From: Perkinsus chesapeaki ATCC PRA-425
Lineage: Eukaryota; Protista; Perkinsozoa
Direction of reading: 5' to 3'
NCBI GenBank assembly: GCA_013115145.1
Contig: JAAPAO010000101.1
Location: 13,817-77,816 of the forward strand
Length of the DNA: 64,000 nucleotides
A model generated the notes under the pieces. It did no database searches. It was given only the letters and a program-made list of their open reading frames with translations, and was not told the origin of the DNA. The position numbers and the translations under genes are program-made. Positions 48,031 through 58,039 of the stretch are shown here, piece after piece (within the stretch, counting starts at the first letter, position 1; each line of letters starts with the position of its first letter).

Positions 48031-49598
48031 GATTTGGGCTGCTCCTGTAACCAAGACTTCGCGTATTTTTCGTCCCTTGCCTTTTGGTGAGTTCGCAGGA
48101 GATCTTGGAGCACTTTTCCCTTCTATCATGAAGCCTCTAACACGGCACCACATAAGATACTCAATCTTGTAGCCAATTGGGTACCACGCGTTGTACTGTT
48201 CACGAATGTTGTGCTGAGTCTATAAATATCTCAAATCTCAAATGTCACGCTTTACACTGTTACTCTTCATTGCACGCACCCATTTTTACCATTACTTGCT
48301 AATAAACCAAGAAGGATAATACGAGGGCAGATATGGCGTTAATGGGGTGTCCGAGTACTAAGGACCTTGGTTACCACAGGAGGCAACTTCGGTAAGCATA
48401 CACGGTTTAATATGGCACAGTTGGGAAATGCGCAAGTATCCAATGTACGATACCACGCGAGCGTTAAAGTGCCTTAAGATTATTAGTCTCAGCAATCAAA
48501 ACAAATAGAAAGCGGTCACAAGCGAGAGTAAATCTCACTACTACCAAAAGGAAGTGTCATCACGGTACTCGACAGCAACAATATAGCTGTAGCAACCCAA
48601 ATCATAGCTCAGACTCTACATGAGAGAAACAGCAACAAGATAACAGCCACCGAAGTGACTCGAGATCTCAGAGCTGGAGGCCTAGATGGTTTCCCAAGGT
48701 GTCTGGACCGTTAGGCTGACAAGAGCAGCCACGGCAATTAGCCTTGGAGAGGCACAGAGGAATATTGCGCAAGTATGACTCGATCACCACCAACAACGAC
48801 AGCGTCTAACCGGCGTTGTGAATCGAATAACCTATTAAAAATAGGAAGAGACACATGGTGGTGGACTTAAGGCTCACGCAAGCGCAAGAGCGTCGACAAG
48901 ACGTCGATGATGCCCAAAGCGCAATCACTCTACCGGTAGAGCCGACCGCAAAGCCACCAAAGCACCTTTAAAAAGGACGCAATGCGGCAAAGCAGGCTCA
49001 ACCGAAGATCAATATAGATGGTGCATCAGACTGACGTGCAAAAGTCTCATCAAGAATCAGGGACTTGGGTATAGCGATATTTTTAATCATCACATGCAGC
49101 TGCAATAAGAATCAAACGTCAGAGAGATACGCAGTTCAACCCCACATAGAAGTCGGAAGACATGGGTTAGCAATAAGCGTTAAATCATCATTCATCTGGC
49201 ATTTTGATGCCTCAGCGAAATCCGCTAATATTTCTCTCCACGGAAGCTCACGAGGAGCCCGGTTTCAGAGTGTGTAACAAAGATGGCTCATCAAAGACAT
49301 TGCACTTCTTACTGGGTCAGATCTGTTGAGCTTGACATAATAGATTAAGGTATCCCCACGGCTGAGTAAGATCAGCGGGAAAATCTAATCATCATTCCCA
49401 GAAGGCATTAACATTCAGTGGAAGTTGACGTTCTTTAAGTGTCAACAGCGGGAAATGTGAATCGATTAGGCAATCGATTTAGACGTTTTTAGCTAATAGG
49501 CGGAGCGTTGCGTTGCACGGGCTACGATTTCGTCGTGCAAGGAGCGCTCGCCTACAAAGCAGAATCGTCGTCACTCTTTGAACTGTCTTTGCTTGATT

Positions 49599-50630
49599 AT
49601 GGCGCTCCTCATTGTGGCTCAAGACACAGCCCATAGTACCGCCTACATCGATGATGTATTCTCAGAGCTCGCCGGTCACATGGACCTCGACGGTCTGAAG
49701 TATTTAGTGTGGGAGTTTGTCGGTCTGCGTAAGCCCTGTGGGCTGAAAGTCGCCGGTAGGGAGCCCAGCGGTATTTACTCAATTGTTGGCAGTTGTGGGG
49801 ATGACATTATCGGACTGAGGCAGTGCCGAACCTCGGGGAAGTCCCAGATAGTGGCGCTCAGGGAAGGCGACTTGGCTGGAGCAGGAAAGCTCATATTGGA
49901 GTCGGAATCCTGGCTTACCGATGCCTGGCAGTCATCCCTGTGTACGGATGGTGATGAGAAGATATATCATGTCGATAACACGGATAAAGTGTATGAGATC
50001 AACAACACCGATGTCAGCGGGGAAATGCGCGTGCTGAAGACAGACGTCCCCGAGTCGGCACTGCTCTACAGGACTCGTTTGATCGATTCAACTCTCTATG
50101 TTGGGTGCGCTGGTGCCAGTCGTATAAGTAGAGTACTTTGCACGGTTGATCTCGCATCTGGGAAATTCGATACTGTAAAATGCAACGGTGAAGACGTGGA
50201 GTTCTTGTATGCATTCGATGTTCAAAAAACTGCAACTGAGGGCATGACCAGGATTGCCTATCTCAGACCTACGAGAGGTCGCCCACGGCTGGAGCTTGTA
50301 ATCGTCACTGTTGATAAGGATGGCATGGCGAAGTCAACTTTGACTTTACCGAGCTCTGGTGGAATGCATTTCCGTTTCCTGGCCGCCTCTGATGGGATAT
50401 TGTGCATGGCCGAGGGATCGGAGCTAAGGCTAATCGACACAGAGTCGACAGAGGTGCTTTGTAAATGCGATATAGGTCTATCTTGGGGATCATCGATCGA
50501 GTCGATGAGTATGGATTCCATCAGGCTAATAGCGTTGAATTCCCATCGCGGCTTGGAGATTATCAATGTGTATGTACAGTATCGCTACACAGCCGAGGAT
50601 TCATGTACTAATGAGCCGGATTGTCAGTAG
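49599..50630 (+). CDS. Intronless hypothetical protein, beta-rich (possibly propeller-like), probable lineage-specific family
   Basis: Open 1-kb frame (first ATG 49599). A short helical N-terminal block (IDDVFSELAGHMDLDGLKYLVWEFVG) precedes alternating beta-strand-like segments. Confidence 0.7.
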   Translation: MALLIVAQDTAHSTAYIDDVFSELAGHMDLDGLKYLVWEFVGLRKPCGLKVAGREPSGIYSIVGSCGDDIIGLRQCRTSGKSQIVALREGDLAGAGKLILESESWLTDAWQSSLCTDGDEKIYHVDNTDKVYEINNTDVSGEMRVLKTDVPESALLYRTRLIDSTLYVGCAGASRISRVLCTVDLASGKFDTVKCNGEDVEFLYAFDVQKTATEGMTRIAYLRPTRGRPRLELVIVTVDKDGMAKSTLTLPSSGGMHFRFLAASDGILCMAEGSELRLIDTESTEVLCKCDIGLSWGSSIESMSMDSIRLIALNSHRGLEIINVYVQYRYTAEDSCTNEPDCQ

Positions 50631-51290
50631 TGCTTGGAGAATCATAATTTCACAATAGTAGCTATTTCCTCCTCTTCGATAGTAGTTTTTAATAATGGCG
50701 CCTAGGGCTGCCTGGTCATCAGCCGATGTAAGCGGCGCTCGCATGCATCTAGAATTTCTGTCGGAATGCCAATTCTGCCCGTATATAAGTTCAAAGCCTT
50801 TTACACTGCCTCTCATCATCCTTTACTGATTCCACAAGTAACACACCATCTCTGTGTTGTTGTTTATACGGATAGAGCTGGGGAAATCGGTCCGGTATTT
50901 TTGGTGGATAAGGTGCATGGTGTTCTCAAAAGCTTCTTGAAGAGAGATTTCACACTGGCGAGCATTTAGCAACCCTTATGGTGTTTGAAAGGCTCTGAAA
51001 CAACAGCTTCGGCATGAGTGTATAATTGAAAGTTATACTGAATATCCCTTAGCACATTTTTCGGCTGGGAAACCCTGTATTTGCCGAATGAATCCAAGTG
51101 TTGCCTTACGCGTTATACGAATCCAATCTTCGTTCATTTCCTCCTCTAGGGTAGCAATGGATCGTCTACGTGCGAATCTTGGACTTAAGTGTGTACCAGT
51201 TATTGGTGAATATGGGATAGATGCATTGCACCGTCACACCGATCCGCATTTTAGCAAGTTTTGCCTTCACTAAGGCTGGCTAGTTTTCCC

Positions 51291-52607
51291 ATGTCTTCGT
51301 CTCTTCGTCCCGACCGTCCATCTTCATCGGTAATCTTACGCGGTGTTACATTATATGATATTATGAAGTATTGGCCATGGAGAACATCAGTTAACTTGAA
51401 ACATAAAGTTTGGGATAGGTTAAGTTGTAAAGCCGAAGATGTTACTGATTATGATATATTCCTAAGTCATGCCTGGGAGAGTAATTGTCTGCTGAAGGCG
51501 GCGGCTCTTGCTGTCCGTCACAACTCAATGAAGGCAGTGTTAATATCACTTTTGGTATGCTGGCTTTTATGTAACATCGATGTACCTGGTTATGTTAGAC
51601 TTTCCGTTCCATGTCTCTGTGCAATAATATGTGTTCGATGGGGTTTCTTATTGACACTCGGAAATAGCCCACGGGTCTTCTTTGACCGATGTTGCATTCC
51701 GCAAGATGCTCCTCACACGAAGCTTGAGTGTATACGGTCTATCCCTCATTATTTACAACATTCCAAATCATTTGTGTTAATGTGGGATAAACCGTTCACG
51801 ACTCGTCTTTGGTGTATGTTCGAGTTCGCTCTGTTCACCAAGACCCATGGCTCTCATAAACTGGAGGTATGGAATCTAATGACAATGAGGTTTGCATTAT
51901 TTGTATTTGTAACTTCATTTACTTTTTGGCTTTGTCATGAAATATTTGACAATTTTATTCCAGTTGGTATCATTGATATCATATTTGCCGTCTCGAGTGG
52001 TTGGTATGCAATAGTTTACTTTCTTCCGAAGGGGGAAGAATGTGTCGCTCTCGGGCTCAACCTTAGAACGGAGAAGCTTAAATGCTCACTAAAGATTGAT
52101 AAAGATGCTCTGCTCTCCCAGATTCGTGATCTTTATGGGAATTACACCAACTTCAACGTGGAAATGTCGCGGATATCGGCACGGGAGTCGCGGAATTTCA
52201 CGAGTATGCCGTTCGCGTCTGCAGTGATTATGTTGTGTATTTTTCCATCAACTTTGGGTGCTTTGATAAGCGGTCAGTTGTCCGTATCCGCGGTTGTGGC
52301 CATGTTCCCTAATATCGTAGATTTCGTGTATACCATCTTAAAGAAGAGTTCATTCGGCAATTGGTTGTCGTATATTAAAGTGGCTCGGCTTCGTCGGCTT
52401 TTGATATCAACTGCTACTTTGTGCATGTCGTTTGGTGTACTATGGCTTGCTCGTCATCTGGACGCTGTATACGGTCCACAATCGTCGTCGTCATCGTCTG
52501 AGTGCTCGGTGTCCATGAGTTCATTTTTAGTGGTCACCCTCACCCATGTTATGTTGTGTGCTACACTTGCCACCCTTCTTACTCGGCTCACGTTCACTTC
52601 ATCGTGA
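51291..52607 (+). CDS. TIR-domain multi-pass membrane protein, intronless, copy A
   Basis: DYDIFLSHAW (betaA), RVFFDRCCIPQ (betaB), CIRSIPHYLQHSKSFVLMWD (alphaB/betaC), FTTRLWCMFEF (alphaC with Glu, codon 51822-51824). Two hydrophobic segments lie between betaA and betaB, and about six more follow C-terminally. Confidence 0.8.
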   Translation: MSSSLRPDRPSSSVILRGVTLYDIMKYWPWRTSVNLKHKVWDRLSCKAEDVTDYDIFLSHAWESNCLLKAAALAVRHNSMKAVLISLLVCWLLCNIDVPGYVRLSVPCLCAIICVRWGFLLTLGNSPRVFFDRCCIPQDAPHTKLECIRSIPHYLQHSKSFVLMWDKPFTTRLWCMFEFALFTKTHGSHKLEVWNLMTMRFALFVFVTSFTFWLCHEIFDNFIPVGIIDIIFAVSSGWYAIVYFLPKGEECVALGLNLRTEKLKCSLKIDKDALLSQIRDLYGNYTNFNVEMSRISARESRNFTSMPFASAVIMLCIFPSTLGALISGQLSVSAVVAMFPNIVDFVYTILKKSSFGNWLSYIKVARLRRLLISTATLCMSFGVLWLARHLDAVYGPQSSSSSSECSVSMSSFLVVTLTHVMLCATLATLLTRLTFTSS

Positions 52608-52849
52608 ATACGAACTGCCGCTGCCAAACTTCATACGGGCATCACCCTTGTGTAGATTGTCATCATCAGAAACCAGGAAATAGCGGATTGACGTTTTCAA
52701 TGGTTTTCAGACACATTTGGGCGTTCTACGTTTCGGAATTACGAGGATACTTTAAACAAGGTTAAACTGTTGTGTTATCTTTGTCCTACTTCGTCGGTTG
52801 GCATTAGTTGGTGAGAATATTCAACAGTAGCAGCAGCAATGGTAAAGGA

Positions 52850-54600
52850 TACGTCTTTGTCAAAGCGTCAGTTGGTAGAAGTCCTCCACACTGCGAAGAC
52901 TAATAGAGAGAAGAATCGTGCGGCTAAGCTACTAAAGAAGTATGAAGCTGCTGCTGCTGCTTTTTGTTGTTGTTCCTGGCGCCGTCCCGGTATAAGTACT
53001 TGTTTCTAGGTTTGATCCCCAGCCACACTTTGAGTACGATGAGGAAGCTACCAAGCAGAATTTGAGGTTGAAGAAGTCGGATAGAATATTCTTGTAAGGG
53101 TTATTTACATAGGGGCAATTTTGAAGATAAAGCTGGTAGGGCTTTATCCATCGGATAGTTATCGGCTTTATCCATCCGGCTCCACCAAAGCGGATAGTCT
53201 GGTTGGGGCGCGTAGGGCATTCGAATACTAAAGGATTGGTGTTCTAACTAACGATGTTACGCTAATCGTTACATTATTTCTTACTTCACTGGCGTAGGGG
53301 ACTTTGCGACGATTTCCAACACCGGCTAAAGATGCGATTTCCAAAATCTCGGAAGAATACTGTACAAGCGCTGCTGCCTCTAGTCGGTTGGTCTGGCGGC
53401 ATCTATATTGCTTTTACCATCGTTCCATGAATGATATAGTGCATAATGGTAACGCAGTTCTTAACATACTCTTTTAGTTACATGTGCTTTCGATGCGATA
53501 GAGTGAGACAATGTCAAGCTAAGGTACTACCGATACAAAGCTGTTGTTATTCAATGTCTTCCTCACTCATTTAGGGTTCCTTCACTACCAGTAAAGGCGT
53601 TAAGACTATCTGCCCAGGTTGCTATAATAATTTATTGTCACAGGCGGAGGTAAGTCTGCGGCAAAGTTAGGGTGGGATGCTGCTGCTGTTCATTCAGGTG
53701 TCTCAACTGCGTGCACATCACCAGAAGCTTGGGCTCACCCCAAAGGTTTTGTAATTAGTCGGGAACCGACCACAGTTTGATGATGCTGCTCGATTGTGAG
53801 GATGATGATAAGCTAAACACCGGATGACTATCTGTATAAAAGCAACGGTTACAGTACACTCATCATTATCCCTGTTGTGTTCGCCAAGTGGGTGATGATT
53901 GCCTTCTTTTGTGTTGTTCGAAGTCTAATATAATGTCTCAAGTCTACGAAGGCTTCAATATCCATGCGCAGTTAGATCACTTGCACGTAGGAATATATCG
54001 ACTGTATTATACTCTTTTGCAGAATGGTTTGGCTCTCAGATGCGTTACCCTGGCACTGGTCATGCCGACATGGGTCGCTATGAATGGGCCACGATAATCC
54101 ACAGGTAGTAGTAGAGAAGAGGTGAGCGGCAGAAATGTTGTGTTCTTTAGAGATACGATGGCATCCCATGTGGGACATCAATCGAGGCTTGCGTACATTG
54201 CTATCTGCGAGAACGAGCCGATCGCAAGAGTGAGGTATAACTGTCTCATGGTAATACGGGGGTATCTTCACTCCTCCCACCTTTCGACTGCGTAATAGAG
54301 CTTGTAGCGGCATCATGCCACTTAGTCAGCTGTACTGTACTGACACTTGGTATAACATAATAACCATTTATGGGAAGGTTCAGTGTGAGCTAATGGGAAA
54401 CTTACGCGGTTGCACGTGACAATGTGCAAAACTGTTCTGATCTCCAAGAGGGTTTGAAATAGAACCGATGAAGCATCTTTGATGACCGCGTACTGTCTTT
54501 TGGATTGATGGGACTCTATGTCCGACTCTACGTCCGCGGGACGTCCGTCCCGCGCCGGAGTCTCGGCTGAATCCAAGTTTGTGCCCAGTATGGACTCCAT
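52850..54600 (-). CDS. Multi-exon hypothetical protein
   Basis: ATG 54600 MESILGTNLDSAETPARDGRPADVESD..LHIVTCNR followed by a GTAAG donor; further splice-bounded segments run down to a hydrophobic C-terminal QILLGSFLIVLKVWLGI. Confidence 0.35.
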
Positions 54601-55738
54601 TTCATGGAGGAGCCACGGTCAGTGAGGCTAGTCTGGCTCAGATCCCAGCGAAAATAGAGCTATAAGGCTGGCACGAGCACTGTAGTATACTTGAAGGGCA
54701 AGTGGATTAATCGGTAGTGGATCATCCCAGAGCTATTTGTAGCTCGGATCCACAACAGGGGTAGATAGGAACTGCAAAACAGGGGCACACTGCAGCCCTG
54801 TTGAAGCCGTTCGTTTTACACGTTTTACGCCGATATCACGAGATATGTAAGCCCGCGGCCGCATACCAAGGAATAGTGCAGCTTATCACGGCGTTATTGT
54901 CTCCCAAGAACACCGCGCATGTCTTCCACTAAGACAGCGAGACTCGCGCGGCGCGGCGTGGTTTGTCTTGGTGTCTGCCACCAAAACGAAAAACGCTAGT
55001 GTCGAACATGACCCATACCGCAACGCGATGAGGAGGCATCACTCAGCAAACATTACACGAAGTACACGGTTATGCGTGACGCTTCCATGTTGTAAATCGT
55101 GTTGTGATAAAACCAACACTGGTTACAGGCGGCTGGTATGCCAAGGACAACCGAAGCCGCTCACGTTCCTTCACTCGGACACAGACCCAACAACCCCAGC
55201 TGCTGCCAATAGCAATAATCAGGACCGTACTGCTAGGAATGGCAGCTTACAATGGGATGGCAGCTTTCAGCGCAGCATTGAGAGAAGAGTTCAATCGAGG
55301 ATCTGGGCTACGCCAGAGTGCAAAGGCGAAGCTCAAGACGAGGGCCATGCCCGAACCCAAAGCAATTGCGTGGTCGCAATGGGGGCGCTTTTGCGCATAA
55401 AGGGCAGGAAAAAGTGAGAAGCTCTTCAAAGGGCAAGTCCGTATCTTGTGGGTATCTGTGGTTTGAGTGTCTGGTGAGTCGGTGAAGAAGACACACACTT
55501 AACACATGGGAGGGTCTCTCTCAGAAAGGTGGACTTCTTGCCGCCGGTGCCCCATTGCGCCCGAGGACTTCCAGTCGCGACGTTGAAGCGTTGGGGATTT
55601 GAGCTGGCGCCGTGCACGTGGCACCATTGAGCGGGCCGCGCACAAGGAATAACTGCGTTGTCGCCCCCCTCCAATCCTTCGTGAGAGCCACCGCCAGTTT
55701 ATAGTATATATCTGGCGGGAAGCTGGGAATGACTAGTT

Positions 55739-55779
55739 GCCAAGCTTAGTTCAAGCCAAGCTTAGTTCAAGCCAAGCTT
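55739..55779. repeat. 16-bp tandem repeat (about 2.5 copies)
   Basis: GCCAAGCTTAGTTCAA x2 followed by GCCAAGCTT. Confidence 0.9.
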
Positions 55780-56716
55780 GAAACATCCTAATGCGCACGA
55801 AATACTGTATTATTTTTGAAGGCACGAGTTCGTGGGGGGAGTCGTTATCGATACGTCCGTTGATACTATCGGTAAACTATGGCCGACTCTGATAGCACAC
55901 TCTCGAAAGCTTATACAAAGCAGTGCTTAGCACACTGTGTTGAATGTGCGCATTCAGCCCGTATCCACTGGGATAACGCAAGACACATATTTCGAATCAG
56001 AGGGGAAACCTTCAACCCGCACGCCGGAGTGCGGAGATACTGAAACACAGTCGGACATGTGAACTCCCGAGAGGAGAGTTTAGAGATGGGACGGGCGATG
56101 GGGCATATGTTGGATAGTGATAGTAGAGAGCCACATAGAGAGACTTCCTCGACTCGGACGCGGCGAGTGGACAGCAGAAACTGCGGCGCGGGGCGAGCAA
56201 GCACCCTTGTGCCGGACTATTCGCACAGTGTGCAAACACACTAGCTAAATTGCACAAAAACCTTAACGTTTACAACAACAAGGGAATGTAAGTACTCGCA
56301 GCTACATGTGGCCGAACAGAATCGATCTTCATCCAATATAACAGGCTTACAGCTGCTACATTACTAGCCGAAGCAGGGATACAGGAAACTTCTACTAGTA
56401 CCACGGGTTGGTTATGAGCATGCGTGGTCGAAGTATGCATGCGCATTGTCGCTGGAAATGGTTATTTTGAATATTTGTATTCTCGGTTGGTTCGCTAGAG
56501 AGTTCGTTGATCATCGTTTTTTTCAGAGTATGCTGCATCCTATCACACGACCCGCGACAAAAGAAGAGCGTGAGAAAATGGAAACCAACAATTAATGTTG
56601 GTTGCTAAAACGATGAATTAGTGGAAGGGATCGTGATGATGATGATGAGACGATATTATTAATCACAACCTTTCCTCGCCTTTCCGATGTGGTCTAGTTT
56701 CCTCCTCGTTTTGTAG

Positions 56717-56727
56717 TTTTTTTTCAG
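56717..56727 (+). promoter_or_regulatory. Polypyrimidine tract plus CAG, 19 nt upstream of the ATG of TIR copy B: candidate trans-splice (spliced-leader) or 5'-UTR intron acceptor
   Basis: TTTTTTTTCAG at 56717-56727; ATG at 56747. Confidence 0.45.
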
Positions 56728-56746
56728 GTTGGCATCTCCCTTACCT

Positions 56747-58039
56747 ATGACCACTCCTTCTATCACACCTTCTGGCCGTGATGGCACATCTTCATCAGTA
56801 ATCATACGCGGTATTACATTATATGATATTATGAAGTATTGGCCATGGGGAACATCAGTTAACTTGAAACATAAAGTTTGGGATAGGTTAAGTTGTAAAG
56901 CCGAAGATGTTACTGATTATGATATATTCCTAAGTCATGCTTGGGAGAGTAATAGTCTGCTGAAGGCGGCGGCTCTTGCTGTCCGTCACAACTCAATGAA
57001 GGCAGTGTTAATATCGCTGTTGGTATGCTGGCTTTTATGTAACATCGATGTACCTGGTTATGTTAGACTTTCCGTTCCGTGTCTCTGTGCGATAATATGT
57101 GTTCGATGGGGTTTCGTATTGACACTCGGAAATAGCCCACGGGTCTTCTTTGACCGTTGTTGCATTCCGCAAGATGCTCCTCACACGAAGCTTGAGTGTA
57201 TACGGTCAATCCCTCAGTATTTACAACATTCCAAATCATTAGTGTTAATGTGGGATAAACCGTTCACGACTCGTCTTTGGTGTATGTTCGAGTTTGCTCT
57301 GTTCACCAAGACCCATGGCTCTCATAAACTGGAGGTTTTGCCATTGATGACAGTAAAGTTCGCAGTGGTTTTCTTTTTAACTTCTTTCTCTTTCTGGTTA
57401 TGTTCTGAATTATTTAGTACTACTATTCCAGGCGTTATTATTGATATCATATTTGTCGCTTCAACTGGTTGGTACGCGATAGGGTATTTCTACCCGCAAG
57501 CCGAAGAGAGTGTTAATATCGGGTTCAAGCTCAAAGTGGAGGAGCTTGAATGTTCGTTGAAGACTGATAAAGATATCCTTCTATCATATGTTCGCAGCGT
57601 TCATGGTAGCTATCGTAACTTCGATCGAATGGCCGACCGTATTTGCCGAGATGTCGTTCGCAATTGGGGTCAGCAACCGTTCCTAATTGCACTTACATGC
57701 TTATCGATTCTCCCTTCAACTTTAGCTGCCCACATTACAGGTGGTTTTATCACGTCCGTTATCATTGCTACTCTTCCAAATCTAGTTTGCTATATTTACC
57801 GTGGACTACTCAGCAGCCGTATTTTCTACCCGCAGCCTCCGCCTGCCTATATAGTGAGTGTCGCTGCTTGTTCAATATCTTTCGGAATTCTGCGTCTAGG
57901 TCGGTGCGTCGATGCATTCTGCTTCGGCATTAACGGTGTTGGTAGCTGTAGCTTTTATATTTACATAGTAGTTATTGTAGTCCACGTTGTGTGTTGTATG
58001 CTTATCGCTTTTGGTTTCACACGCTCAACATTTTCCTAG
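56747..58039 (+). CDS. TIR-domain multi-pass membrane protein, intronless, copy B
   Basis: Same TIR motifs as copy A (DIFLSHAW, VFFDRCCIPQ, RLWCMFEF with Glu codon 57290-57292); diverged hydrophobic C-terminal half. Confidence 0.8.
   Translation: MTTPSITPSGRDGTSSSVIIRGITLYDIMKYWPWGTSVNLKHKVWDRLSCKAEDVTDYDIFLSHAWESNSLLKAAALAVRHNSMKAVLISLLVCWLLCNIDVPGYVRLSVPCLCAIICVRWGFVLTLGNSPRVFFDRCCIPQDAPHTKLECIRSIPQYLQHSKSLVLMWDKPFTTRLWCMFEFALFTKTHGSHKLEVLPLMTVKFAVVFFLTSFSFWLCSELFSTTIPGVIIDIIFVASTGWYAIGYFYPQAEESVNIGFKLKVEELECSLKTDKDILLSYVRSVHGSYRNFDRMADRICRDVVRNWGQQPFLIALTCLSILPSTLAAHITGGFITSVIIATLPNLVCYIYRGLLSSRIFYPQPPPAYIVSVAACSISFGILRLGRCVDAFCFGINGVGSCSFYIYIVVIVVHVVCCMLIAFGFTRSTFS

Follow-up and report, generated by a model that had tools for sequence, protein, structure and literature searches.

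A putative TIR/HET-superfamily domain predicted to be threaded twice through the membrane in tandem paralogues of a Perkinsus-type alveolate

The closest described counterparts of the proteins analyzed here are the enzymatic TIR domains (RPP1, RUN1, RPV1, L7, AbTir, SARM1), the fungal HET domain (PF06985), a heterokaryon-incompatibility cell-death domain that is a remote relative of TIR (PMC10890737, PMC4986451), and TIR domains that are tethered to a membrane. Among the latter, the Toll-like and IL-1 receptors, TirC of Dictyostelium, whose membrane anchor restrains a toxic NADase (PMC13142454), and the multi-transmembrane TIR proteins of Gephyrocapsa huxleyi (PMC12489294) carry the TIR domain at the cytoplasmic membrane face, a location that is also predicted for the Perkinsus proteins. 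In these tethered proteins, however, the domain is contiguous and follows a single helix or an N-terminal helix bundle, whereas the Perkinsus helices are inserted within the fold. With enzymatic TIRs, the Perkinsus proteins share a predicted α/β fold and the motifs D-[IV]-F-[LI]-S in βA, V-F-x-D in βB and W-C-x-x-E, with its plant-type Cys, in αC. They differ from them in that the chain exits the domain twice across the membrane, αA and the αD position being continuous with transmembrane (TM) helices, and in that they possess neither an NB-ARC/LRR, ARM/SAM or coiled-coil partner nor a Pfam TIR match. The likeness to HET lies in the ordered motifs S-[YH]-x-W, D-x-x-C-I-x-Q and R-x-W-x-x-x-E and in a large, fast-evolving family. 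Yet HET domains are contiguous, soluble and usually N-terminal in NLR-like or lectin-fold proteins, while the Perkinsus domain is embedded in a predicted 8-TM protein and its W-C-x-x-E form is nearer to that of plant TIRs.

Two neighboring genes on the forward strand of the window (the whole 64,000-nucleotide stretch of DNA that was analyzed) encode such proteins. Gene 1 (CDS 51291-52607; ORF 51261-52607, first ATG 51291) is intronless and specifies 438 amino acids plus stop; gene 2 (CDS 56747-58039; ORF 56729-58039, first ATG 56747) is its paralogue of identical architecture and specifies 430 amino acids plus stop. In-frame stop codons are located upstream of both starts (at 51252 and 56714), both ORFs of the tandem are intact, and the deduced proteins are 68% identical across 400 residues, with a dN/dS of about 0.2 for the pair. 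RNA contigs were found over gene 1-specific sequence at 51867-52023 and 52381-52546, and the intergenic DNA is mostly at zero; this transcript support is thin, as the contigs are of low depth and one of them carries paralogue-type variants. Gene 1 is bounded by a spliced-leader acceptor at 52806, which belongs to the following gene, and a Perkinsus-type spliced leader is present in the genome. Considered together with the topology described below, these data make us highly confident that the pair represents real tandem intronless paralogues of a Perkinsus-type alveolate that code for eight-helix membrane proteins.

A prior reading of the sequence alone (referred to below as the sequence-only reading) had reported two hydrophobic helices within the domain and about six further TM segments. 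Both hydrophobic stretches were recovered in gene 1 and gene 2, and hydropathy and the AlphaFold model give the same two plus six helices. The order along the chain is βA-αA, TM1-2, βB to βD, TM3-4, βE-αE and TM5-8 (coordinates of gene 1, forward strand). The first TIR piece (amino acids 51-79; 51441-51527) comprises βA (DIFLSHAW; model strand 56-59) and αA, which continues into TM1 (model helix 66-95); the βA stretch of gene 2 gives a weak ThsB TIR-like match (E 0.009). Between αA and βB lies the TM1-TM2 hairpin (amino acids 80-123; 51528-51659), apparent from hydropathy peaks and from model helices 66-95 and 99-123, whose far-side turn consists of three residues and contains no Lys or Arg. 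The second piece (amino acids 124-195; 51660-51875), delineated from the model, holds βB (VFFDRCCIPQ), αB, βC (FVLMW), αC (RLWCMFEF) and βD and is the most highly conserved region in the family alignment. Directly after βD and in place of αD, TM3 opens the TM3-TM4 hairpin (amino acids 196-256; 51876-52058; model helices 196-219 and 225-256) with a far-side turn of five residues, again free of Lys and Arg. Structural alignments define the third piece (amino acids 257-305; 52059-52205), which contains a short βE-like bridge, αE (268-282) and one more helix; its residues C265, D270 and F288 occupy columns that are conserved in at least 90% of the members. Most family members carry a Cys/His-rich insert in this piece, and the window proteins are without it. 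The variable membrane tail, TM5-TM8 (amino acids 306-438; 52206-52604; model helices 308-327, 330-352, 365-394 and 409-435), and the TM3-TM4 hairpin are the two most variable regions.

The split of the TIR domain proposed by the sequence-only reading is thus real with respect to the TM1-TM2 hairpin, but a single split understates it: since TM3-TM4 is also placed within the fold, where it separates βD from βE/αE, the fold appears to have two interruptions and to consist of three pieces. With hairpins at amino acids 80-123 and 196-256 inside it, the domain departs from the one contiguous unit that is characteristic of the TIR superfamily. All TIR pieces share one membrane side, which is rich in Lys/Arg, and are not distributed over opposite sides; the loops on this side contain 30 Lys/Arg residues versus none on the far side, where the loops are 3, 5, 2 and 18 residues long. 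With every loop Lys/Arg on the TIR side and such short loops on the other, the proteins have no ectodomain, unlike TLRs, whose ectodomains are large. The term receptor in the TLR sense is therefore unsupported. Nor do the proteins have the remaining hallmarks of Toll-like or IL-1 receptors, a single helix and a C-terminal contiguous TIR; they have eight helices, and their TIR pieces are N-terminal and interleaved.

An AlphaFold model was computed from a 117-sequence alignment (pLDDT 86.5, pTM 0.87; scores of 82.7-86.5 across five models). It contains the parallel βA-βE sheet flanked by helices of a flavodoxin-like α/β fold, although βE is a weak strand represented by a one-residue bridge only. 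Foldseek returned nothing at E<=1e-3 for the full-length model. In a wide structural search without Foldseek, the best match was the RPP1 TIR (Z 8.5) and the top 50 were mostly TIRs or the related deoxyribosyltransferase fold. A second-look search yielded exclusively TIRs at ranks 1-22, with Z 8-9 and 121-142 residues aligned (AbTir, Z 9.1 with 121/134 residues; RPP1, 9.0; RUN1, 8.4 with 141/163 residues; SARM1, 8.0). Values of 8-9 are middling by the tool's own scale; the argument draws its weight from how consistent the hits are and from their coverage, which amounts to 85-90% of the target chains. The alignments reach model residues 310-318, and their length exceeds the content of the first two pieces. 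With TIRs leading both structural searches, the model predicts, with a high degree of probability, that one TIR fold is rebuilt out of the split pieces, as had been anticipated.

Direct Pfam searches placed the window proteins in no family: hmmscan reported zero matches even at E<=1, TIR, TIR_2 and HET included, and the proteins accordingly stand outside curated-threshold membership in TIR (PF01582) and TIR_2 (PF13676) of the STIR clan and in HET (PF06985). The TIR_2 assignment suggested at the outset holds for the homologues and not for the window proteins themselves, so the link is transitive plus structural. Weak matches to TIR_2 and TIR were detected in 99 and 87 of the 113 aligned members (best E 5.8e-6 and 8.6e-7) and to HET in 30 (best E 0.003). 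Where bit scores were shown, they were 13-18 for TIR/TIR_2 versus curated cut-offs of 21.3 and 28, and 12.2 versus 22.5 in one example for HET. The homologues match Pfam TIR/TIR_2 and solved TIR chains in the second piece; in a profile search of solved chains, 16 of 18 matches were to TIR domains, with alignments that span βC/αC and take in WC..E. Judged by its SH.W and D..CI.Q motifs, the domain is equally HET-like and TIR-like. The missing direct Pfam match, the lack of a significant Foldseek match and the middling Z values would fit an unrelated hydrophobic protein with chance motifs and an artefactual model. We consider this the least probable of all explanations, since the member-wise Pfam, profile-to-solved-chain and structural searches are three independent lines that converge only on TIR, and automatic UniProt annotation already labels some family members TIR and one HET-E1.

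The four motifs named in the sequence-only reading (DIFLSHAW, VFFDRCCI, SKS[FL]VLMWD and RLWCMFEF) are all present in both copies. They are not the product of chance, because 13 positions (F57, S59, H60, W62 and K69 in the first piece; F130, D132, C135, Q138, R172, W174, C175 and E178) are invariant in 117 of 117 aligned members. Profile alignment puts one of these invariant residues, Glu178 of W174-C175-x-x-E178 (codon 51822-51824, forward strand), at the catalytic-Glu position of NADase TIRs; the same motif position of gene 2 is encoded at 57290-57292 (forward strand), and both codon positions agree with the arithmetic from each ATG. The stretch aligned with WC..E of the family is WCLDEL in 7xoz, a plant ADP-ribosyl cyclase TIR. 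By alignment, the proteins thus possess the conserved αC Glu that marks NADase-type TIRs, in line with the original proposal. Whether the proteins are Glu-dependent enzymes is, in our estimate, evenly balanced, and we refer to the activity as putative.

Many animal TIRs are scaffolds. The split TIR-like fold might likewise be real but non-enzymatic: it would offer a surface for homotypic assembly or adaptor function, like the TIRs of TLR, MyD88 and IL-1R, or form a structural cap, with the function residing in a helix bundle for transport or channel activity. The best sequence matches to solved chains include TIRs of the IL-1 receptor accessory type and TLR2, the TIRs of MyD88, MAL and TRAM align structurally as well, and the membrane bundle weakly matches pyrophosphatase, MraY and aquaporin/formate-channel bundles. 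These bundle matches (Z 5-6.5) are nevertheless under the level that is meaningful for helical bundles on the tool's scale, and conservation within the family is lowest in the bundle, whereas the invariant residues gather at catalytic-pocket sites of NADase TIRs, W-C-x-x-E is the plant enzyme form, and the best structural matches are the active NADases AbTir, RPP1, RUN1 and SARM1. We therefore consider a non-enzymatic role rather improbable.

A similarly low probability is assigned to an active TIR/HET enzyme with another chemistry: a 2',3'-cAMP/cGMP synthetase or an RNA/DNA nuclease, both of which have been reported in plant TIRs, or some unknown activity of the HET type. The invariant Cys stands three residues ahead of the Glu, a C-x-x-E spacing that matches Cys132/Glu135 of the plant L7 TIR, in which Cys132 is required for 2',3'-cNMP synthetase activity and dispensable for NADase activity. 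The SH.W and D..CI.Q motifs are nearer to HET, whose mechanism of action is unknown (PMC10890737), than to canonical TIR, and to this come the HET-matching members described above. A membrane-apposed active site would, however, be awkward for the binding of nucleic-acid filaments, and NAD+ cleavage is what enzymatic TIRs bearing this Glu have in common.

The explanation that we favor, and to which we attach a moderate degree of confidence as a whole, is a split TIR/HET-superfamily domain in an 8-TM protein that acts as a putative membrane-controlled NAD+-type enzyme with a cell-death or non-self output. On the cytoplasmic side, three chain stretches (βA-αA, βB-αB-βC-αC-βD and βE-αE), separated by the TM hairpins, would form a single domain in which αA is continuous with TM1 and βD with TM3. 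Through its invariant W-C-x-x-E Glu, this TIR-type enzyme would cleave NAD+ or a related nucleotide. The membrane part may gate the activity: a change in the helix bundle could reach the active-site region through the two continuous helix/strand junctions, or lateral clustering within the membrane could unite the TIR heads. Active TIRs need their heads to be brought together. A product signal or the loss of NAD+ would then lead to cell death, dormancy or a reaction to non-self; a role in immunity or cell death is a tentative proposal that we hold with less confidence than enzymatic activity. More doubtful still is that these proteins constitute a new class of membrane-integrated TIR enzymes, in which membrane change is mechanically coupled to NAD+ cleavage and which would be the principal TIR-type system for cell death or non-self in perkinsids and dinoflagellates. 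Since two elements of the catalytic fold would themselves be TM helices, an intramembrane change (lipid state, damage, an inserted foreign protein or voltage) could be coupled to NAD+ cleavage without an ectodomain or adaptor. A bolder variant sees the variable helix bundle as a channel that is gated by what its own TIR head produces.

To our knowledge, almost nothing is known about infection sensing and the triggering of cell death in alveolate protists, which include oyster parasites, coral symbionts and bloom dinoflagellates. A globular enzyme fold that is threaded twice through the membrane is an unusual protein architecture, and it suggests a direct path from a membrane event to NAD+ signaling. 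If active, the proteins would open regulated cell death of dinoflagellates and perkinsids to experiment and provide an intermediate form linking fungal HET and plant-type TIR domains; if they form a class of their own as outlined above, its scope would include coral symbionts and bloom formers.

The census proposed for Perkinsus and dinoflagellates revealed a very large family that spans perkinsids and dinoflagellates, with thousands of members. Counted as cluster representatives at 50% identity, the profile search returned 3144 at E<=1e-3 and 1808 at E<=1e-10, with members from Perkinsus olseni, P. chesapeaki, Gymnodinium smaydae, Durusdinium trenchii and Symbiodinium; Pfam has no model dedicated to the family, and we found no paper on it in the literature. 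The family is biggest in dinoflagellates (Symbiodinium, Durusdinium, Gymnodinium). This distribution bears on the idea that the proteins are parasite factors directed against the mollusc host, which mimic or deplete host TIR/NAD+ signaling like some bacterial TIR proteins. The Perkinsus-type spliced leader and the life of Perkinsus species within mollusc haemocytes (PMC2868825) would suit such a function, but these dinoflagellates are not haemocyte parasites, and the Perkinsus proteins, with their eight membrane helices, have neither long loops on the far side nor a visible export signal, which makes it very improbable.

Nucleotide comparison of gene 1 and gene 2 revealed a near-identical head block of about 540 bp (51327-51866, partner 56795-57334, forward strand) with approximately 97% identity versus 50-70% beyond it; the upstream DNA is unalignable. 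The dS is 0.08 in the block and saturated outside it, and in the TM5-TM8 tail, where dS is likewise saturated, dN is 0.8. The combination of a head dS of 0.08 with saturated tails indicates, at the sequence level, that the block is a gene-conversion tract. In two DNA samples, the head contig depth was 4-6x that of the flanks. Across the family alignment, the TIR pieces are the most conserved and TM3-TM8 the most variable parts. In its behavior the family resembles a recognition family: its head is conserved and homogenized by gene conversion, its membrane tails diverge fast, each genome carries many copies, and the members number in the thousands. On a related contig (L001), identity to the positional counterpart is only 36%, compared with about 78% for the small gene beside it.

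Genes 1 and 2, the tandem TIR paralogues of Perkinsus chesapeaki, are real genes. The open reading frame of gene 1 (51261-52607, + strand) has its first ATG at 51291, is preceded by an in-frame stop at 51252, and encodes a protein of 438 residues; that of gene 2 (56729-58039, + strand) has its first ATG at 56747 behind an in-frame stop at 56714, and encodes 430 residues. The two proteins are 68% identical, and no third copy of the TIR gene was found in the 64-kb window. All motifs quoted in the sequence-only reading were recovered in both proteins, the codons of the putative catalytic Glu sit where it had placed them (51822 and 57290), and hydropathy analysis bore out the hydrophobic stretches that it described, two between motifs 1 and 2 and about six more past motif 4. 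RNA contigs cover gene 1 over 51424-52023 (of which about 150 nt are gene 1-specific) and 52381-52546, whereas RNA contig cover of the intergenic DNA around the TIR genes is mostly zero; this speaks, if modestly, for transcription of gene 1.

A word-indexed homologue search with the window proteins performed poorly and yielded just one relative, because hydrophobic words swamp the index. With a profile of three head sequences, searched exhaustively, we obtained 3144 cluster representatives at E ≤ 1e-3, of which 1808 reach E ≤ 1e-10. Named family members belong to Perkinsus olseni, P. chesapeaki, Gymnodinium smaydae, Durusdinium trenchii, and Symbiodinium. The matches among AlphaFold DB clusters are uncharacterised proteins, a few of them automatically named 'TIR domain-containing' or 'HET-E1', with an accession series that we take to be that of Symbiodinium and Perkinsus. 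At least 100 protein atlas clusters were matched as well; they share no common Pfam family, and their taxon labels hint that haptophytes may also possess members.

Conservation across the family is highest in the TIR pieces, and membrane helices TM3-TM8 are the most variable parts. Residues F57, S59, H60, W62, K69, F130, D132, C135, Q138, R172, W174, C175, and E178 (gene 1 numbering) are invariant in all 117 aligned sequences, so that the alignment shows an unvarying residue set around Glu178, the putative catalytic residue by its position in NADase TIRs. In the columns of TIR piece 3 that follow TM4, a Cys/His-rich insert (consensus C-F-C-C...H..P.T-G....C-D-R) is conserved in most members. 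The proteins of genes 1 and 2 and their Perkinsus relatives lack part of this insert, which could be a metal-binding knuckle.

Checked against Pfam, the TIR assignment drew weak matches across the family and none for the two proteins themselves: neither matches any Pfam model, even at E ≤ 1, but among 113 head segments scanned singly, TIR_2 was matched by 99 (best 5.8e-6), TIR by 87 (best 8.6e-7), and HET by 30 (best 0.003). No other Pfam family recurred among these segments. The bit scores of the homologues, where listed, lie under the Pfam curated cut-offs. When the family profile was compared to all solved chains, 16 of the 18 matches at E ≤ 10 were TIR domains, and the family stretch S.RLVVLWSPRYFTRLWCtYEL aligned to βC/αC of IL1RAPL2 and of a plant ADP-ribosyl cyclase TIR, with Glu on Glu. 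PADLOC gave one weak match only, ThsB TIR-like, from the βA stretch of gene 2 alone. The C-x-x-E spacing of the family equals that of Cys132/Glu135 in the plant L7 TIR, and motifs 1-2 (SH.W, D..CI.Q) are nearer to the fungal HET domain, a remote TIR relative of unknown mechanism (PMC10890737), than to canonical TIRs.

Single-sequence AlphaFold prediction of gene 2 reached a pLDDT of 40, and the model used in its place was built with the 117-sequence alignment (pLDDT 86.5, pTM 0.87; the five models span 82.7-86.5). In gene 1 numbering, it places β0 at residues 17-20 and βA at 56-59, followed by αA, which continues into TM1 as one helix (66-95), and by TM2 (99-123). Next come βB (128-130), αB (141-156), βC (161-165), αC with W174, C175, and E178 (173-186), and βD (191-195), which runs straight into TM3 (196-219). 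Beyond TM4 (225-256) lie a one-residue β bridge near 264, αE (268-282), and an extra helix (285-304), and then TM5 to TM8. Foldseek gave no significant match of the full-length model to solved structures, because its alignment, being sequential, is disrupted by the inserted helices; its highest probabilities went to plant TIRs. A gap-tolerant aligner recovers the TIR fold in the full-length model. In a Foldseek-independent comparison with 48,161 chains, the RPP1 TIR ranked first (Z 8.5, 133 residues), and about 30 of the top 50 were TIRs or the related deoxyribosyltransferase fold, the remainder being generic helical bundles. In a second-look search, ranks 1-22 were TIR domains, among them AbTir (Z 9.1, 121/134 residues), RPP1 (9.0), RPPT (9.0, 139/165), RUN1 (8.4, 141/163), and SARM1 (8.0); for the membrane bundle, this search found no convincing structural relative (Z 5-6.5). 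Every alignment to a TIR spanned roughly residues 50 to 315, over a length greater than the 102 residues of pieces 1 and 2; the loop after TM4 therefore appears to supply the last part of the fold. As to the rival explanation that the TIR likeness is due to chance, Z values of 8-9 are middling by the aligner's own scale, and the argument for a TIR is therefore based on how exclusive the TIR matches are and how much they cover, plus the sequence evidence.

The model is of an eight-helix protein with a predicted TIR-like fold built from three pieces at the cytoplasmic face, in keeping with the sequence-only reading of a split TIR in a multi-pass membrane protein. Loops on the TIR side of the modelled helices hold 30 Lys/Arg and those on the opposite side none, which by the positive-inside rule makes the TIR side, with all three pieces, the predicted cytoplasmic one. 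The far-side loops comprise 3, 5, 2, and 18 residues; judged from the model, an ectodomain is absent, so that sensing would take place in or at the membrane, or via clustering.

The split domain is probably homologous to the enzymatic TIRs of plants, bacteria, and SARM1 and to fungal HET, and by analogy it may function like them. It falls under the formal Pfam thresholds and is not contiguous. In all known membrane-tethered TIR proteins, among them TLRs, TirC of Dictyostelium (PMC13142454), and the multi-TM proteins of Gephyrocapsa (PMC12489294), the TIR is undivided, whereas in the proteins of genes 1 and 2 it is split by membrane helices. A literature search turned up neither a membrane-split TIR nor any TIR of Perkinsus/perkinsids or Symbiodiniaceae/dinoflagellates. 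We propose that the TIR head is an active enzyme that would cleave NAD+ or a nucleotide, with its activity controlled by the membrane bundle, either via αA-TM1 and βD-TM3, where the junctions are continuous, or by in-membrane clustering; its output would be a cell-death, dormancy, or non-self response. Two rival explanations concern the activity itself. The domain may be a non-enzymatic assembly domain, or it may perform chemistry other than NAD+ cleavage, for which the invariant Cys, of plant type, suggests 2',3'-cNMP synthesis. A further rival takes the proteins of genes 1 and 2 to be a host-directed parasite factor.

Products of the ADP-ribose type are substrates of NUDIX enzymes, which makes the adjacency of such an enzyme to a TIR suggestive. 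Of the Durusdinium trenchii gene models P0155 and P0154, one has a NUDIX hydrolase domain (aa 86-208) fused to a TIR family member, and the other, NUDIX-only, has the same N-terminus. The fusion may equally be a merged gene model from a tandem array.

The TIR genes combine a homogenised head with fast-diverging tails. Genes 1 and 2 are about 97% identical at the DNA level over 51327-51866 (partner 56795-57334), past which identity drops first to 65-75% and further on to about 50%; the DNA 5' of this head block is unalignable. Since dS is as low as 0.08 (dN 0.017) within the block and saturated (dN 0.27-0.8) beyond it, the head similarity reflects recent gene conversion, not constraint alone. 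Contig depth over the block is 4-6x that of its flanks in two DNA samples, and several further gene copies therefore probably carry the same head. On L001, a related contig from another sample, P0011, the positional counterpart of the TIR genes, is followed by clear counterparts of the small gene downstream of gene 1; the small-gene counterpart is about 78% identical at the protein level, but P0011 only 35-36% to genes 1 and 2.

This small spliced gene (52806-53839, + strand; exons from RNA contigs) lies directly 3' of gene 1 and, with its spliced leader (acceptor at 52806), bounds gene 1 on the downstream side. Loose letters at its 5' end in the RNA contigs match PmaSL1, the spliced leader of Perkinsus marinus (PMC3101222), which marks the window as DNA of a Perkinsus-type alveolate. 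Its introns lie at about 52940-53009, 53094-53477, 53522-53572, and 53648-53695, the first holding a short CTG/GTT simple repeat (52935-52978), and its basic 120-aa product, which belongs to no Pfam family, has two CxxC pairs. Upstream of gene 1, an ORF of 350 aa (49578-50630, + strand) has neither a Pfam family nor a paralogue in the window; with no second copy found there, we rejected it as part of the TIR gene duplication. A low-depth RNA contig joins 54174-54249 to 56526-56658 (+ strand) by a GT..AG joint across 2276 skipped bases. The contig stops some 90 nt short of the gene 2 ATG. Stops in every frame before this ATG exclude an upstream coding exon of gene 2; the joint may represent a 5' UTR exon of this gene, read-through of an upstream transcript, or a non-coding RNA. 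Two short stretches upstream of gene 2 (55875-56073 and 56662-56850) show a 3-7 fold increase in DNA contig depth, with loose contig ends at 56009 and 56038; they look like a short dispersed repeat distinct from the shared head block.
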